From contig CM074511.1 of NCBI GenBank assembly GCA_037379345.1, forward strand, positions 52,892,862-52,956,861: a stretch of 64,000 nt of DNA. The letters run 5' to 3'. The notes under the pieces were generated by a model. That model did not search any database and was not told where the DNA came from. It worked only from the letters and a program-made list of their open reading frames with translations. Both the position numbers and the translations under genes were made by a program. Positions 16,893 through 49,800 of this stretch are shown here, one piece after another; within the stretch, counting starts at the first letter, position 1, and each line of letters starts with the position of its first letter. This DNA is from Perna viridis. Taxonomy: Eukaryota.

Positions 16893-19800
16893 CTGTTATG
16901 CAACAAAGAGGGATAAAGGTTAAAACTAAAGTAAGTTTATAAAGATATACATGAATTACAAATTTTCAAAATGTAAAAAGGTTGTAGCTTCTAAATAATA
17001 AATGAAATAACATAATTATAATTGAACTTGACCTGTATTTCATGGCCGAAAGCAATGTGTTAAAATATGAAAATATATTGATGAGGCAGTTCTGTAATTA
17101 CTGGGTATCATAGGGAAAACCAAAGTGTGATTGACAAATGGGTTGGACGAATAGATGGAAGTATGATAGATCTTTGGAGAACTATATACCCTTGATTTTA
17201 GCAGAAAAATAATAAAAAGCCTCCCCAAGCACAGCATTACATGACTGCAGTGGGCAAACCCTGAACAGTTGGGGCAAGTGTGGACACAATATAAGTTTCT
17301 GACACATTTAAGCATAAGGACTTATGGATACGTCAAATAGTTTGGACACTTATTGCACAAAATTTTAAATTAAATGAAAAATTTTCAAAATCAGACCAAA
17401 AATTTAAAAAAAATCTATTTTTTCATGTGTGGCCCCTTTGACCCCTTATAACTAGATTACTGTTAGAGATATCTGAAATCTGATTGACATAGGCAGACTG
17501 AGATTTTAATGAGGAATCCAATAAAAAAAAATTTGAAATCAGACCAAAAACAAAGAAGTTTTTTTACAGGTGTGGCCCCTTTGACCCCTTATAATTCGAA
17601 ATCATTAAGAGATATCTGAAATCTGATTGAAAAATGCACGCAGGGATTTTATAGGAATCCAATGACAAAAAATATCAAAATTTGGACCAAAATAACCAGT
17701 TGAATATTTTGGGTGTTGCCCAACTTTATTCCCCTGTAACTCAAAAGCCATAGGAGATATATAAAATTTGATTGCAAATGAAGCATAAAATTTGTTTACC
17801 AGAATTAAATAAGGTAAGGTACACAATTAAAAAAGAAACAATTAAAATCAGAGAAAAAAAAAAACAGACATTCTACATTCTATTTAATAAAACACCTAGT
17901 TTTACCCTTTTTGGCTCCTTTTTCTAACTTTTTCTAGCTTACGTCAATAGATATGAATAATTCACCAAAATTTCATAAAAGTTAGTGAAAGTGTTTTTGA
18001 GTTATTGTGCAAAAACTTGAAAACCCCCTTTTTATAAGTAAAAAAAATTCATAACAAGGAAATGAAAAATCTGAAATTTACAAAATCGAAAGAGAGCTTA
18101 TATCAATACATATGAACAATTTACCAAAGTTTCATAAAATTTGGTGAAAGTGTTTTTCAGTAAATGTCCGAAATCTGGACAACCGACGGACGAAAAATGG
18201 TAAAAAACCATAATATGTCCCGTCTTAGACGGGCATATAAAAATTGCAAACCTTATCAGGACATGACTTACATAAATTGATTCTTCTTTCATGTGTCATG
18301 AGATCAACAGCACTACCAGTAACACTCTCTATGTCTGATTCATCAGGAGCTATACTATTCCTCGAGCTACCACTTCGATGAAATATACCTATTATATATC
18401 ACATAAATATGAAATAAGAAGTCACTATTAAATGTTTACATTCATCATCACAGAGGATGATGGAACAATTCTAAAAAGATTACTACTTTGACTTTTCTTC
18501 AAAATTCTACTAATGTGAATTGGATCTACAACTAAGCCACAAATGTACAGGTATACATCTTTTCGAGCATAGGGAAGACATTTCGGATACATGAGTCAAC
18601 TTTTTCTAAGCACAATTTGAAGATCTAGTATTCTTGGCATTTGTAAAAATTTTCTCGAGAAATAACAGGTCTCTAAAAGATTACACATACCCAGTTCTAC
18701 TAAGTAGTGCAAGGAGTGGAAAACATTAAGTGCATTAAGTTCACAAAAAGAAATCTACATCTGCTGGTCAGACTACACATACACTTCTAATGGAAACAAC
18801 ACATAGTTTTCAGATTAGTGTCATATAAGTCAAAGAGCCAGACTGTTTCTTAAAAGTAACAGATTAATGCCCTGAAGATGCTTCCAATGAGGTTAAATAC
18901 ACAGTAATTTTGATATTATAAAGTGATCTTATTGGACCATCTCTAAAGATTAATGTTAAGTTTTATTAGTTTTTTTTGTAAGTAGTGTCAGATAAGCTTA
19001 TCTATTGACCATTCAAAATCTATGAATATTATTGATACAAATTTGTTTACTCCAGCAGAATATTTCTCCCAAGTTAAGCTGGATTGTCTGTAGAATGTAC
19101 AATGTTAACAGAAGGATGACAGCTAACATAATGACTCGGTAAATTGTATAGAATTGAAAAAGAGTTTGGATCATGGATATTATTTTTTTTCCCATATCTA
19201 TGGCCAAACTTTTCAGATTTTCATTAAAAATATGTGATACCTGAACCAATTTAAGCTAACTCAAGTCAAAAGAGTGTGAGCAAGTTGAACAAAAAGCCTC
19301 TCGCTTCATTAAGACTAAACATGTCATGTATAAAATGAGCAAGACCATGCTTATCTTCCTTTATACACATATCATATGATTACCAGACTATATAGCTCTC
19401 ATAAAATCCATTGAGTGGTTTAGAAGGAGTTTTTCTTTCTCAATAAGTAGGTAAATAAACTGGTTAACAGACATAAAGATTGATTCCTATAAAACCCTAT
19501 CATTTTCTTGGAAGAGTGTAATAAAACTTATAGCTTGGATATATGAAGCTAATAGATGCAAAAATTAATAAAAGTGAAATTATCAAGCAGACCTTATCAG
19601 GTAAACCATTACACATTCCCCAAAAAAAAAAAAAAAAAACTAAACACAGCAAACAGAAGGTTAGGTTTGTTAGTATCACCTCTATCCCAACAATGTTTCA
19701 CACCTTTACGTTTGGCTGTGTAAGAAAAAAAAATATCTTTAACCTACAAGTTTATCAAACTAATCACCATTTTAATTGCTAATACATTCTGACAACCAAA

Positions 19801-40800: not shown

Positions 40801-43800
40801 TATTGCCTGCTCTTCATACCTAGCTATGTAACTACAGCCAAAACCAAATGCTACACTGGATGATAAACACTGAAAAAAAAGTATCAAATAAAACAATAGT
40901 AAAGATCAAGTATAGAATAATCACAATTCTGCTAGACTTGCATTTAACAAAAACAATATTCCCGTAACCAATGTCATTTATGATCAACAGCAATATTAGT
41001 GATGAAACAGATGTCATTTTTACATTTTGCCAAAACCTCATAAAAATGTTTACTTAATAATAGATTTCGTCTTGTATAGTACTTTTAAAAATATGATTAC
41101 GGTAATGAATTGTAACTATTCATGAAAGGGTGAAAAAACACCCATTGAAACATAAAACTCCTATTTAAGCAAGTATCATTTGAATTCTCTCCATCTATAC
41201 TGAAATTCATGTGTGCACTGTGTATCATGCATTTTTGTGAACTGTAGTTCTTCATTTGACAGAATATAATATGATATCTCTGATGTCTGTGAAAAAATAT
41301 TTATTTTTAAATATCACTCATTAGATACAGTTTACCTACCTTAGTTAGTTTTAATTCTACTTATAATCTTTTATAAGGAAATCATAAAATTTTCATTCGT
41401 TGATTGATTGATTATGGTTTAACATCCTACGGCATTTGATTTATTTCAGGAGAGCAATTGACCAATCTAACAGACTTAGAACTAGTCAGCCATGCTGAGC
41501 CAGATCTTTATTGAGGCTCACAGAGGCAACAGCCCACAGATAGGAATGCAAACCCACTCAAACACATTACTCTGACTCTGAGCCAACCAGTCATCACCCT
41601 ATCCTCTTTAATATCACTTGTTTGGAGGAGAAGCAGTGACTACAAATAGTAAAGTCTTTGGTGTGACTTGGTCTGGATTGAACACATGACCTCCTACAAT
41701 TGAGGTTAACACGCAACCCTGAGACCAATGAGGCAGTTAAATTACATTAAAGTTGAGTTCCCGATACTCACTGCTATGGTTTTGTGTGTGTTGGTCATTA
41801 GTTCTTCCCACTGTGTACACAATGGATATGGCAGATACAACATGAAATATAGGAATCCAGCAACACATGCTGCTATGTTTGCTTTGGAGAAAAACACACT
41901 GATCAGGAAACATTGTGATATAGTAGCTATGGTGAATGCTGTCAACATGAACAGGACTACAGTAGGATCAGAATATTCCAACACTTTACCAGTCTGTAAA
42001 AGTTAAAGCAATTAAAAAAAATATTATTATGGTTATTTTGATGTATTTCAATATATCTGGAAGTTTAACTACTCTGAATAGAAGATTTTCACTTCAATGA
42101 CTATTAAAAAATTATGATAGTTCTCATCAAAACATCAGTAATACCCAGAACTTCACACTCAACAACGAAGTCCTTATATTTATTACAGTGTATTGGCAAT
42201 CATTAAGTCATTTTGTATGAGAAATAATGAATACTAAAATGAATCAAGCACACACTCAAAACATAAGACTCAATATGAAGCCTGCATTATATTGTAGTTT
42301 ACTTGTTCGGACTGTTAGTTCATCATGTAACATATATAAGCAAGTACTAGTAACTAGTAATGAATATAATAAATAAGGCAATGGCAATAACAGAATTGGT
42401 TGTCAGTGTATCAACTTACTATGTAGGAAAAATTGTTAAAAATAGACTGTACCAAATGATAGACAAATCTAACAACCAATCCAGGTAATCTAAAACAGTG
42501 CATAAGACACAGTTAAGACAATTAAAGTAATCTAAAACAGTTGCCTAAGACCTAGGTAAAGATAATCAAGGTTATCTAAAATAGTTGCCTAACACCTGGT
42601 AAAAATAATCAAGGTAGTCTAAAACAGTTGCCTAAGACCTGGTTGAGATACTCAAGGTAGTCTTAAAAAGTTGCCTAAAATTTGGTAAAGATAATCAAGG
42701 TAATCTAAAACAGTTGCCCAGGATCCTGTAAAATAATCATGGTTATCCAAAATAGTTTCTTTAGACTGGGTAAAGATTATCAAGGAAGTCTAAACAGTTG
42801 CCTAAGACCTGGTAAAGATAATTACCTTCATGATGATAACCAACAGGATTAGTGATATAAACATAACAATGAAAGCATCAATAAACCACGCCAACCAGTG
42901 GACTCCATTACTCAGGCCCATGATCTTCATAACTTCCTTCAAACGTTTCTCTTTCTCGTAGACGATATTTTTACAAATCATAGCCACAGATAATACCCAA
43001 GCTAGCACAAGGAATAGCGGTAAAGATCGGGAAATGGCATATATAAACCTGCAAAATAAATCATATATATGATTTCTATAATATCTTAAACTTAACTATT
43101 CGACAGGTAAAAAGCTAATACCCAGAACATATTACTCCAAACACACTATCATTTGTTTATATTTTATATTATAGTTTCCAGCTTGAAATGGAGAGCAAAA
43201 ATTCAAAGAATAATGGATTTTTGATAAGTAAGAATATTTGAAACTATTTTAAAATTATATATAAAGTTCATTCATGTTGATAAGTAAAATCACATTTAAC
43301 TCTATGTTAACTGTTAACTAAAAGGGCAGCTTTAGTAACAATCTTACAAAATTTCAGACATGAGGTGATTCATGCATGTCAAAAACCACCTCATTCACCT
43401 TCATTTCTTATTCTGAAACAGAATAACCAGTCTTAGTTTGTCATTTAGTTGTTGCACTTTTGAGATGTAAATTATATACATAGTACATAAAATTAGCATT
43501 TTTCTAGAGTTACTGTTCTTACTTAGGTTGATTTAAAAGTGAGATATAAATGTATGGTTTTCTGAAAAATACATATCTGTGTTCAGAAAGGCCTATAATT
43601 ACATAAAAAATATGGCCTATGAAGACCAAAAAAGTATTGTTAGTTTCATCATTTTTTCTGCACCATAACTGCCTCCACTACTGGCAGTGTCAGAACTTCA
43701 AATGAATTGGTACTTAATACTTTGAATGTTATCTCTTTAATCTGTCTTTTTCTTGTGAATATTTCTCTTCCACTTAGCAGCAAAATAAAGTTAAATGAAC

Positions 43801-46800
43801 TAACAGCTGAAGTTAATAATGATTACATATGAAAAACTTATAGAATAGGACGATAAAGATTTACTGTCACTGATCTATGAATGACTGGATGATTTTTCTC
43901 ATATAGTAATATAAACTGACAAATAATACCAAATTATGGGGAAAACAAACATTTTTGACATCTTATTTCTATTAAGAATAAACATCAAACACCAAAATTG
44001 GTTCCCATCAAAAAGAAGTATCCCACTGTTGTGTATACAGAAAACTTCAAAACCACAAATTCAAGAATCCATGAAATGTGAAAATACAATGAAATAACAC
44101 AAAAACAATATGCCATGAAATATTCTGATTATACAGTATATATACAAACATGCAGTTTACTAGCAACAGAGGTTTATAAGTTGTATATATTGTTGAGCCC
44201 TGGTGCCTTTCACATACAAAGACTATTGCTGGGTATAATAGTACATATGATAATGTATTGATTTAGTCCTTATAGACAGTTTATAGTAACACCAGGTCTC
44301 AACATGAGTTAACAGACATGCATTAAATAGCAAGCCAACAGTAACTCACTTGTCCCGTATGTAACAAGGATATGGAAACTGTTGGAGTATAACACCAATT
44401 TCTGAGGTTAGATTAGTTTGTACTTTTATTAGTGCATGGTCAACCATGTCTTGAAGGTAGACAAATCCGTAGCGGACATATCTATTCCAAGCTCTTGGCC
44501 CAGGTCGCCAGTACCTATGAAAAGTAACAAGCAATTATATAAAATAGAACTGTACATACTTATCTTGAATGTAGCATGGATAAGGGAACATCTGAGTTAC
44601 AACACCAACATCTGATGTGCTGTTAGTCTGTAGCTTTATAATGGCATGGTCTATCATATCTTGTAGGTATGCAAACCCATAAGTTACATATTTAGTATCA
44701 GTAGGAGCTGTTGACCTTGGCCCTGGTCTCCAGTATCTATAACATATCTTATTTTATTGTACAAGTAAATTTGGTATAATATGACTGCAATAGCTGATCC
44801 TATATGTATCCACATAATATGATATGAAATGTTTCCAAAGTATATCAGAATTTTTAATACAGCAGCAAGTATAGAAGTCAACACTAGATAACAGCATCAT
44901 AATAAAAATGTGAAATACATATTTGAATCCGATCTTTCTTATCAATAAACACTTCTGCATGTTATAAAATATTTTTTCTGTATAAAAGAACATCTTTGCT
45001 CTCTCTCAAGTCAAGCTAAGTGGACAATGAACCAGTACTTCACTTGAACAGTGAAGTGAACCAAAACCTATATTATAAATATAATGTCTGTAAGTCAAGC
45101 TCAGTATATACTCCACCTGTAATTGACATTAATTGTGAAGAGAACCCAAACATCTATTAGAAATATAATGTCAGACAAGTTAAGTGGAAACTGTACCGGT
45201 ACTTGACATGAACAATAAAGAATATCCCAACTCACTATTACAAATATAATGTCAGTGGATACTGTACCGGTACTAGACATGAACAATAAAGAATATCCCA
45301 ACTCACTATCACAAATATAATGTCAGTTGATATTGTACCGGTACTAGACATGTACAATAAAGAGAACCCCAACTCTCTAATTTAAATATAATGTCAGTGG
45401 GTAGTGTACTGGTACTAGACATGAACTATGAAGAGAACCCCCACTCTCTAATGTAAATATAATGTCAGTGGATACTGCACTTGTACTTGACATGAACTAT
45501 GAAGAGAACCCCACTTCACTATTATAAATATAATGTCAGTGGGTACTGTACTGGTACTAGACATGAACTGTGATGAGAACTTCAGCCCTCTATTAAAATA
45601 ATGATTTGCAAACCTATCTTGAATTCTGTTTGTTGTATCTACTCTGTCTTGATTCATCCTTATGGAATATTTTACATGGGTTGCTAATCCATTCTGATAA
45701 TCTTGGTCAAATACAATGGCTAAAACACAAAAGTTCTTCTTGTAAAAAATCTGCATCTATTTGGTCCTTAATCAAATTATTTCATTATAATCATGTCAAA
45801 CTGTTCTTAGCAATTACCACAATATACCTTTATCTACTACTGATATTCAGAAACTGTGTATTTCAATTTGATACAACAACCAAATGAGTAAAAAGCATGC
45901 AAAGATAATTGGTTGTGTATGTCTTTCATCTAAAGTTTAAAAGAAGCCAACAAATCCCAAGGAAATTTATTCAATATTGATCATTTATTTTATATCATGG
46001 AAGTAGTTATGTTCAACTTAACATTTCTTAAAAAGCTTTAAAAAGCTACCTTTGAAAAGTTAAGACCAATGACCTGACAATGGGCCCATCTAAAATATTT
46101 AATTTGCCATCAGGATGACAAAACTGCAATACACTAGACCTAGACCTAGATACCTACCTCCAAAGTACTTATTCTGACCAATGAGTTTCAGACTTTCAAC
46201 TGTCAATTCATATTCTGTTTTAAAGCCCACAAACTTGTCAAACACAAAGCACTGCAAAAAGCAATAAATATAAATATACAAAATGTAAGGTCTTTTTTAA
46301 CTAGGGTTAGAAACAAGCCACAAGTAGGAAAGACCATTCAACAAGAGATTCAAGTCGCCTGCTGTAAACTTTGACATCATAATAAAGTTCAATTAATTAT
46401 CATAATTTCACTTTCATGAAAAGTGTCATAATAAACTAAAACTAAATTACAACCAAAATTTATGGAATACAGTAATTGAACCTTTTCATGAATTTAGTAA
46501 AAACCAAAAAAAACATTACACAGATATTATTCTTCAAATAACAATTTACCAATAAAATTAACTTTATGAGTTTTTTCATTGGAATTTTTACTAATTGAAT
46601 GATATTTATTTGGATGAAACTATCAATAGGACTAAACCATGTATACAACTTACCTTTCCACACTCTGACACTGTTTCTAACACCTGGTTGACCATGTATA
46701 TAACTTACCTTTCCACACTCTGACACTGTTGTCTAACACCTGTTGGACCATGTATATAACTTACCTTTCCACACTCTGACACTGTTTCTAACACCTGTTG

Positions 46801-49800
46801 GACCATGTCTATAACTTACCTTTCCATACTCTGACACTGTTGTCTAACACCTGGTTGACCATGTCTATAACTTACCATTCCATACTCTGACACTGTTTCT
46901 AACACCTGGTTGACCATGTCTATAACTTACATTTCCACACTCTGACACTGTTTCTAACACCTGGTTGACCATGTCTATAACTTACCTTTCCATACTCTGA
47001 CACTGTTGTCTAACACCTGGTTGACCATGTCTATAACTTACCATTCCATACTCTGACACTGTTTCTAACACCTGGTTGACCATGTCTATAACTTACATTT
47101 CCACACTCTGACACTGTTTCTAACACCTGGTTGACCATGTCTATAACTTACATTTCCACACTCTGACACTGTTGTCTAACACCTGGTTGACCATGTCTAT
47201 AACTTACATTTCCACACTCTGACACTGTTTCTAACACCTGGTTGATCATGTATATACTTACTTTCCACACTCTGACACTGTTTCTAACACCTGGTTGACC
47301 ATGTATATAACTTACCTTTCCACACTCTGACACTGTTTCTAACACCTGTTGGACCATGTATATAACTTACCTTTCCACACTCTGACACGGTATCTAACGC
47401 CTGGTTGACCATGTCTATAACTTACCTTTCCACATTCTGACACTGTTTCTAACACCTGGTTGACCATGTCTATAACTTACCTTTCCACACTCTGACACGG
47501 TATGTAACGCCTGGTTGACCATGTCTATAACTTACCTTTTCACATTCTGACACTGTTTCTAACACCTGGTTGACCATGTCTATAACTTACCTTTCCACAC
47601 TCTGACACTGTTTCTAACACCTGGTTGACCATGTCTATAACTTACCTTTCCACACTCTGACACTGTTTCTAACACCTGTTGGACCATGTATATAACTTAC
47701 CTTTCCACACTCTGACACGGTATCTAACGCCTGGTTGACCATGTCTATAACTTACCTTTCCACACTCTGACACTGTTTCTAACACCTGGTTGACCATGTC
47801 TATAACTTACCTTTCCACATTCTGACACTGTTTCTAACACCTGTTGGACCATGTCTATAACTTACCTTTCCACACTCTGACACTGTTTCTAACACCTGGT
47901 TGACCATGTCTATAACTTACCTTTCCACACTCTGACACTGTTTCTATCACCTGGTTGACCATGTCTATAACTTACCTTTCCACACTCTGACACTGTTTCT
48001 AACACCTGGTTGACCATGTCTATAACTTACCTTTCCACACTCTGACACTGTTTCTAACACCTGGTTGACCATGTCCATAACTTACCTTTCCACACTCTGA
48101 CACTGTTTCTAACACCTGGTTGACCATGTGTATAACTTACCTTTCCATACTCTGACACTGTTTCTAACACCTGGTTGATATTGTTCAGGGCATCTTTCCA
48201 AGTATAATTAGATATATTTATATCATTGCCACTATACAGGAACCTAAACAAAGGATCACATGGACTGTAATTTGGGTCCACATCACACATGAATGAGAAG
48301 TTTAGTCCCGCTGCTTGAGTGATATAGTTGTTCAGTGCAGCTGAGGCAAAACCAGGTATGAGAGATGAGATATCAAATCCCCCAACAGTTTGGCCTGTCA
48401 GGATATCTGATATATTAAATCCTGGGAGTGATCCATTACAGGCTGTTTGTCTAAATGTATGCCAGACATCATCACAAACCTCAGAGCATGTAAAGTCCTG
48501 AAATGAAGTAAAAGCTGTGAAAGAACTTTTAATCTGGACTATCAGTTTTCATTGGTACACATTTTTTCTCTAAAAATCTAATTTGTATGAAATCATGGCT
48601 ATTCACCATGAAAGGGCTAACCAACCAAAGAATGTTACAAAAAAATAGGGACTAGTACTCCATGAGAACATTTTGCAGATTTTTCAAATAATTAAGCCAA
48701 TGTTTCTGAAACTAATTAAAAAACAAAATATCATAGTCACCACAGGCTTACAGTTCATACTTTAACAATATGACATTAATACATGCACTACATATAGGTG
48801 ACCTTCGTTTATAAAAACTAAATAATGTTAATGATAGGTTACCCTCAATAGTTGAATATTTGGATCTGTATCAAGGAAATTGAACAAAGAATCAGATTCT
48901 ACCCTCCATGTATTAGCAAGATCTACAATGCTGAACAGATCATCAAATGTCTTGTTTGCCTAAAAAATAAATAATTTATAATGATAGAGCACAGTTTTAA
49001 TAACAATTTTTGATAGTTATTGTAAATATATAAATTTTCACATTGAACTAATTTTTGCTATTTTAATGGTGGACTGAAAAGCATGAAAAATAGTACTTTA
49101 CACTAATAATTTTTTACACCATTAAGATTGATACCCGCAAATATGGTCACTTGACAGAATCCACAAAAATTAGCAGCTGCAAAAATTAATAAGTTTATAG
49201 AAATTACGAGGAATAGGGTTGGTTTACCCTTGATTGAATTACCCTTAACTCATTAACTTAATGGACAATTGACAAAGAGATATGAATTTTCTATCAGACA
49301 TACACTCAAGTACCTATGAAATGATAAAAAGGTTGAATCTCCTTGTTATTTGTCCAGTGATCTACCTATGACAGTTCATCAAGTTGTAATCATTCAATAA
49401 AGGGAAGACCAACTTTATTCCCTAAAGTCGACTACATTTTAAATCACTGTGATATCCAGTCATATTATATTTATACACATGTAATTCCTTTTTATGTTTA
49501 CACCACATTTAAGGAAGTACACCTAAGGTAAGGGACATAACTCTTGAAATCAGTGATACGTTTGTATCATATTCAATTTCACCAACGCCTTTCAATCAGT
49601 CCAAGTTACTTTGATGCTTACATGAGATTGATGTAAAATGCTGAATACAAATGTTTACATGATTCGTAAGAGTTGTGTCCCTTACTCTAGGTCTACCTCC
49701 TCAAAACACTGTCATTTCTTGTTCATGAACGAGAATTAAGATTAAAATTTACAATAAAAGACAATATGGTATTGAGAAATTGACCATACAAGCCTGCTCA

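Follow-up and report, generated by a model that had tools for sequence, protein, structure and literature searches.

Two similar exons lie 45 nt apart in a gene on the minus strand of the 64,000-nt stretch of Perna viridis DNA analysed here (the window), and this arrangement raises three questions. Does each mRNA carry one exon or the other, what would keep the two apart, and which part of the encoded protein would be exchanged? An earlier note, made from the letters of the window, had proposed that the two are mutually exclusive exons swapping the extracellular gateway segment of an ABCA1-like transporter. In this regard, we examined the layout of the gene, the RNA that crosses the pair, the alignment of both exons with human ABCA1, and the corresponding exon in relatives.

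The gene and its duplicated exon

When its exons were searched one at a time against Pfam, the gene showed two matches each to PF12698 (ABC2_membrane_3; 42.8 and 28.6 kb) and PF00005 (ABC_tran; 39.6 and 24.9 kb), as well as a match to the R1 regulatory domain specific to ABCA1 (PF23321; 21.3-21.6 kb). A full-length ABCA1-like protein of the scallop Argopecten irradians, P0130, is colinear with the gene from residue 28 (60.7 kb) to residue 2482 (16.8 kb). Among solved structures (PDB), human ABCA1 is the best match to both of the paired exons, followed by ABCA4 and ABCA7. By these matches, which come from exons searched singly, the predicted product is an ABCA1/4/7-type full ABC transporter, for which the order TMD-NBD-TMD-NBD and the R1 domain were all found.

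All features of the pair lie on the minus strand. The upstream constitutive exon occupies 45614..45721, as given by the sequence, by contig pieces (X1 record 8, X9 record 9) and by joints to both 44736 and 44514, and it is followed by an intron of 877 nt (44737..45613) defined by the RNA joint 44736/45614. Exon A (44560..44736; 177 nt, 58 full codons), known from the sequence and RNA contigs, is separated by a 45-nt GT-AG spacer intron, read from the sequence (44515..44559), from exon B (44350..44514; 165 nt, 54 full codons), known from the sequence, an RNA contig and reads. An intron of 1301 nt (43049..44349), defined by an RNA joint skipping 1301 nt, then leads to the downstream constitutive exon (42826..43048), which is reached by joints from both A and B and in which the TMD1 region starts (ABC2_membrane_3, PF12698, E 7e-8).

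Each of the two exons is preceded by a pyrimidine-rich tract with AG and followed by GT; the flanks are ttatag and gtatgt for A, and ttcatag and gtgagt for B. Both carry one nucleotide of a split codon at their start and two at their end. The upstream exon finishes with ...RIQD plus AG, and the split codon reads R whether A or B joins. The coordinates, lengths, phase and canonical splice sites that the earlier note had assigned to A and B all match the sequence, as does its spacer of exactly 45 nt (44559-44515), and its flanking exon edges at 45614 and 43048 are right by both the sequence and the RNA joints. Mutually exclusive exons (MXE) are recognised as homologous neighbours of the same phase and similar length, and A and B are such neighbours, with 66% amino acid identity and lengths of 177 vs 165 nt.

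The spacer is indeed, as had been claimed, far shorter than the other introns of the gene. The next-shortest one placed in the gene (37754-37619) measures 136 nt, three times as much, and apart from the spacer, none of the introns compared, about 35 in this gene and about 31 in a paralogue with which tblastx aligns about 38 colinear exons, is shorter than 136 nt. Apart from the 45-nt and 136-nt introns, the modelled introns of the gene and its paralogue range from roughly 190 nt to 4 kb, sizes that hold as orders of magnitude only, the automatic splice modelling being crude (895 nt given where RNA shows 877).

The gene also contains tandem repeats. Inside the 877-nt intron before exon A, TRF reports a 71-bp unit in 5.4 copies (45183-45568), and a 43-bp unit in 8.1 copies (42478-42822) begins immediately after the donor of the downstream exon. 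At 38135-38478 of the minus-strand gene, a 57-bp unit repeated 6.1 times reproduces the final ~50 nt of the NBD1 exon together with its GT donor (caggtaata / caggttata). The same gene has two arrays of this kind, exon end plus 5' splice site, the other being a 55-bp unit in 28 copies at 46636-48178. In addition, the intronic stretches 43295-43496 and 44002-44102 show an RNA word depth of up to ~1900 on both strands, and 92-98% of the reads there continue into unlike sequence, some with fixed differences. These two stretches are pieces of a dispersed repeat, and their RNA comes from copies elsewhere, not from this locus.

RNA across the pair and the probable basis of exclusivity

RNA was mapped to 42790-45790 from two contig runs (X1 and X9) and from the raw reads of two stranded RNA-seq runs (X21 and X22), with a joint being listed when three reads or a contig carried it, at counts of 1-5 reads per joint. 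All four joints predicted by the earlier note are present. The upstream exon joins A (45614>44736, skipping 877 nt) in contigs of X1 and X9 and in three reads of X22, and A joins the downstream exon (44560>43048, skipping 1511 nt including B) in contigs of X1 and X9, three reads of X21 and five of X22. The upstream exon also joins B directly (45614>44514, skipping 1099 nt including A) in a contig of X1 and three reads of X22, and B joins the downstream exon (44350>43048, skipping 1301 nt) in a contig of X1 and one read of X21; in X22 there are three reads into B from upstream vs zero from B to the downstream exon.

The joint from A to B (44560>44514, skipping 45 nt), whose absence had likewise been predicted, is listed in none of the four runs X1, X9, X21 and X22, and neither is the joint that skips both exons (45614>43048); at these low counts, and with contigs dropping rare variants, A+B or skip-both forms below roughly 10-20% would escape detection. 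Since mRNA with both exons or with neither would be in frame, and so stable and visible, this absence is informative. Neither routine inclusion of A and B together nor a copy that is never transcribed was seen, and both exons are spliced in RNA.

The proportions differ between samples. The X1 assembly forms a bubble of two contigs: in one of 235 nt, exon A is bordered by 30 and 26 nt of the neighbouring exons (depth 11.3), and in one of 223 nt, exon B is bordered by 32 and 26 nt of those same exons (depth 5.72). Exon B makes up about one third of the A+B word depth in X1 and is absent from X9, where a single 8229-nt spliced contig reads upstream exon, A, downstream exon, and B has zero depth. 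In all exonic reads, the first mate maps to the plus strand, matching minus-strand RNA in a dUTP-type library. For a 406-nt stretch, the run index gives 20 holder runs, 11 of which carry about 0.37 of the words, equivalent to one exon, and five of which carry 0.54-0.80, equivalent to both. We took the single exon in the runs near 0.37 to be A because X9 shows that exon to be A. Exons A and B are each expressed, and separately; A is the major form, and B is a minor one whose share varies between samples.

Four routes to mutual exclusivity are recognised, namely NMD, U2/U12 incompatibility, competing RNA structures and steric hindrance (PMC6071210, PMC5740500). Enforcement by NMD, which requires a frame shift upon double inclusion or skipping (PMC6071210), is out, as 177 and 165 are both divisible by three and the loss of both exons leaves the reading frame intact too. 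Incompatibility between U2 and U12 sites is out as well, the donors being gtatgt, gtgagt and gtttgc with ag acceptors and no U12 donor consensus. For steric hindrance, the accepted limit is a donor-to-branch-point distance under about 50 nt (PMC5740500). Here the entire intron is 45 nt long with candidate branch adenosines at intron positions 20, 25 and 35, and the branch point for the B acceptor lies at most about 35 nt from the A donor.

Steric hindrance is the best candidate mechanism because NMD is excluded by the frame and the spacer is only a third as long as the next-shortest intron, and we infer that it is probably the cause of the exclusivity. Overall, we consider it likely that A and B form a two-exon mutually exclusive cluster, produced by tandem duplication of one ABCA1-type exon and most likely sterically enforced. 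In such a cluster, the duplication would have led to mRNAs that each carry A or B, and from there to two proteins. One spliceosome would be unable to pair the A donor with the B branch point, the two being too close (at most about 35 nt); a bound A donor would block the B branch site, and vice versa, with the result that a transcript defined at A would skip B and one defined at B would skip A.

It is rather unlikely, on balance, that exclusivity is instead set by competing RNA structures or trans-acting splicing factors, with the short spacer being incidental. Usage of B varies between runs, so some regulator is needed in any case, and the tandem pairs of two other loci described below, L077 with 109 nt and L044 with 1.6 kb between the copies, indicate that an exon pair can persist without a tiny spacer. 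However, exclusivity in those pairs, which are known from their DNA, is conjectural, and the 45-nt intron by itself already falls under the accepted steric limit. When the region from A through the spacer to B (44330-44780) was folded as RNA, it was slightly more stable than shuffled sequences (z = -1.76), but this score is marginal, since 5 of 100 shuffles were equally stable, and no docking/selector pair was found in that region. Our literature search on bivalve minimal introns returned nothing specific.

The exchanged segment and the history of the two copies

In human ABCA1, the gateway consists of residues 564-592, a charged loop that takes phospholipid out of the outward-open cavity and delivers it to the tunnel (Segrest et al. 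2022, PMC9381790). D571G, R587W and W590S/L are Tangier mutations (PMC9381790), and R587W and W590S serve as loss-of-function controls (PMC10792246). Efflux by the human protein falls by 80-85% with D581K/E584K/D585K and by 95% with F583K/W590E (PMC9381790).

Over their whole length, both exons align with human ABCA1 573-630, A gap-free (E 9e-14) and B with one gap (5e-12), and the segment containing R587 and W590 is thus the one that the earlier note had named. Its location at the gateway was also borne out: the alternative exon covers 20 of the 29 gateway residues, the C-terminal part of 564-592, plus 593-630, and the equivalents of 564-572, the first gateway residues, are encoded by the upstream exon (45614..45721). 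The anchors YW, PGPR, YV.YGF and YLQD are conserved in A and B, and Q597 is retained in both.

The differences between the copies number 20, of which nine fall in the gateway part 573-592, all within 580-590, and 11 in 593-630. The loop between PGPR and YGF has 11 residues in A and seven in B, which lacks 582-585, including the only acidic loop residue of A. This is the four-residue shortening that had been noted before, and the residues reported with it are also seen in the alignments: at 587, A has K and B has R, and at 590, A has T and B has R. The loop substitutions from A to B thus change K to R at 587 and T to R at 590, and also T to W at 581; those at 580 and 586 are milder. The two proteins differ mainly in this 11-residue stretch of the loop. 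In 593-630 the changes are mostly I/V/L or D/E, with exceptions at 611 (S/L), 619 (T/L), 621 (M/Q) and 629 (Q/R). The net charge of the whole exon is -1 in A and +2 in B.

The vertebrate residues D581/E584/D585 and F583/W590 are not conserved, A keeping only D585 and B none of them. Transfer of the human gateway model is uncertain because the acidic cluster is not conserved even in A. It is a plausible guess, though only a guess, that the A and B isoforms may differ in headgroup preference or acceptor interaction.

The two peptides share 66% identity and 81% similarity (E=1e-30), and their alignment has a single four-residue gap. Their nucleotide identity is 70% over 54 aligned codons and 48% at third positions, in line with the description of the pair as diverged in DNA and conserved in protein. 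The dN/dS comparison that the earlier note had proposed gives saturated synonymous sites (pS 0.77) together with a pN of 0.17 and a dN of 0.20. All columns that are invariant across seven homologues, in a 7-sequence alignment, are intact in both exons. Because synonymous sites are saturated yet dN is 0.20, the duplication is old in sequence terms, and purifying selection has acted on both copies.

In scallop P0130, A and B both map to residues 773-834, with 66% (A) and 55% (B) identity, and the downstream exon is 83% identical to residues 832-906, a value consistent with a pteriomorph bivalve. The scallop orthologue (L081, GCA_041381155.1 CM084269.1) has a single A-type gateway exon at 17150-17323, and no B copy is present between this exon and the next. 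A search of the own genome returned A, B and the exon of one paralogous gene, with no third copy of the exon. This paralogue, an ABCA1-like gene at G000:C1:55646000-55678000 on the same chromosome and 2.7 Mb away, is more compact and has a single gateway exon (55666501-55666674) that is 60% identical to A. A JGI fragment (P0022) is 83% identical to the paralogue's gateway exon. As a side observation, the scallop intron after the gateway exon (L081 17459-18222) contains a tandem series of ~14 copies, 60 nt each, of the 3' end of that exon, an array of the same exon-end kind as those in the window gene but derived from the gateway exon itself.

Single exons were also found in L007 and L080, from a clade that includes the gastropod Nucella, and in about 50 annelid-like metagenome loci. 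In L079, codons 1-27 of the exon are repeated in decayed form at 1566-1646, 62 nt upstream of an intact exon that groups with that of the gastropod Nucella lapillus. Among the 52 loci of a metagenome scan, only L044 has two full copies, the other loci with multiple matches having an exon split by an intron. The L044 copies lie at 2213-2383 and 4001-4174 of a JGI metagenome contig, and those of L077, an ENA assembly contig, at 1057-1236 and 1346-1525. The copies of both loci, which come from unrelated data sets, are full and same-phase, with canonical splice sites. In the tree, the first copies of the two loci pair with each other and so do the second copies, and all four share a clade that excludes A and B (99/95 support). 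These groupings suggest that the same exon was probably duplicated independently in the L044/L077 lineage, where it probably makes up a separate conserved alternative-exon pair. On conservation in related genomes, a check that the earlier note had proposed, the exon itself is present in relatives; the scallop and gastropod loci have a single intact exon, and among the other loci compared a full tandem pair occurs only in L044 and L077.

The best identity to B is 70%, in a fragment that groups with a Nucella lapillus protein. A B-type loop of seven residues occurs in 0 of the 239 homologues retrieved with exon A, exon B and a 7-sequence profile from a library clustered at 50% identity, which makes this zero weak evidence for absence, and the 11-residue loop length of A occurs in 123 of the 155 loops counted. 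Exon A is the ancestral-type copy and exon B, with its more basic loop, the derived one. In an exon tree whose 58 columns are too few to date the A/B split, B joins a distant exon clade with the motif RY.NFGF.YLQDLIDRA only weakly, at 65-85% support, and a clade of A and B is not rejected (AU p = 0.35); orthology of B with that motif clade is a hypothesis on which we built nothing. At the locus of one member of that motif clade, a second copy was not found within 10 kb on either side. The simplest reading is that the duplication took place after the mussel-scallop split; alternatively, the pair may be older and B may have been lost in scallop. Exon B could be young in lineage terms despite the saturated dS.

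These data also bear on whether B has a role of its own. That B is only a by-product of splicing, tolerated at a low level after a lineage-specific duplication and lacking a distinct function, and that only A matters, seems improbable to us. Its loop is absent from the retrieved homologues, and A, with the ancestral loop length, is closer to the scallop and gastropod exons and is the sole form in X9 and probably in most runs. Against this, dN is 0.20 at saturated synonymous sites, and the family-invariant residues are all intact in B; its splice sites are canonical, with an acceptor tract better than that of A. Moreover, B provides about one third of the A+B word depth in X1, and its upstream-joint reads equal those of A in X22. 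That A and B are both constitutive and included together, giving a tandemly repeated protein segment, is hardly credible: double inclusion (177 + 165 nt) would be in frame, but the joint across the 45-nt spacer occurs in 0 of 4 runs, joints skipping A or B are present in reads and contigs, and the segment appears twice in 0 of the top 150 library proteins, the extra stretches in P0122, P0188 and P0207 not being a second full copy.

For the preferred reading of a mutually exclusive pair, we offer one broader idea, tentatively. The gateway loop might be a recurrent target of diversification, in which a sterically enforced choice between a neutral loop of normal length and a short, basic, W-bearing one alters the lipids or acceptors handled, and in at least one other invertebrate lineage the L044/L077 pair might have arisen independently for the same purpose.

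Meaning and comparison with known systems

For annotation, models of this gene should carry two isoforms, without an A-B join. The pair represents a natural set of gateway-loop variants in an otherwise identical transporter and could be used to test the 'extracellular translocase' model, according to which phospholipid reaches the tunnel from the membrane by way of charged and aromatic residues in the gateway. It would also be a clean steric example in which the splicing block can be studied alone; NMD cannot contribute, because every exon combination is in frame.

Like the gateway of human ABCA1, to which A and B align unambiguously, the exchanged segment has a variable part, 580-590, that includes the Tangier sites R587 and W590. 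Unlike in the human protein, the acidic cluster and F583/W590 are not conserved, and a gateway function is assumed here from the alignment.

In terms of splicing, exons 2 and 3 of alpha-tropomyosin are the classic steric-hindrance exon pair. As in steric MXE pairs generally, the exons described here are adjacent and homologous, separated by an intron that would be too short for a donor and a branch point to be used together. The present case differs from the classics in that the whole intron is 45 nt, whereas theirs is a long intron with a distant branch point, and in that it concerns an ABCA1-type transporter of a bivalve-like invertebrate, for which the mechanism is the one we infer. Steric-hindrance pairs account for about 9% of human MXE clusters (PMC5740500).

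With regard to the exchange of a protein segment, our case resembles substitution isoforms made by tandem exon duplication. The insect MRP/ABCC arrays are isoforms of this type in transporters. The nAChR alpha6 gene is another tandem-exon-duplication substitution case (PMC5111602). As in both of these, duplicated exons swap a segment that would face the substrate or ligand, the rest of the protein stays constant, and both copies are under purifying selection; unlike in these systems, the swapped part here is an extracellular loop and not a transmembrane pocket. In the literature searched, we found no report of a tandem alternative pair in any ABCA gene, and the papers containing both terms were generic splicing surveys. 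The kind of arrangement, tandem-duplicated MXE around a too-short intron, is well known.
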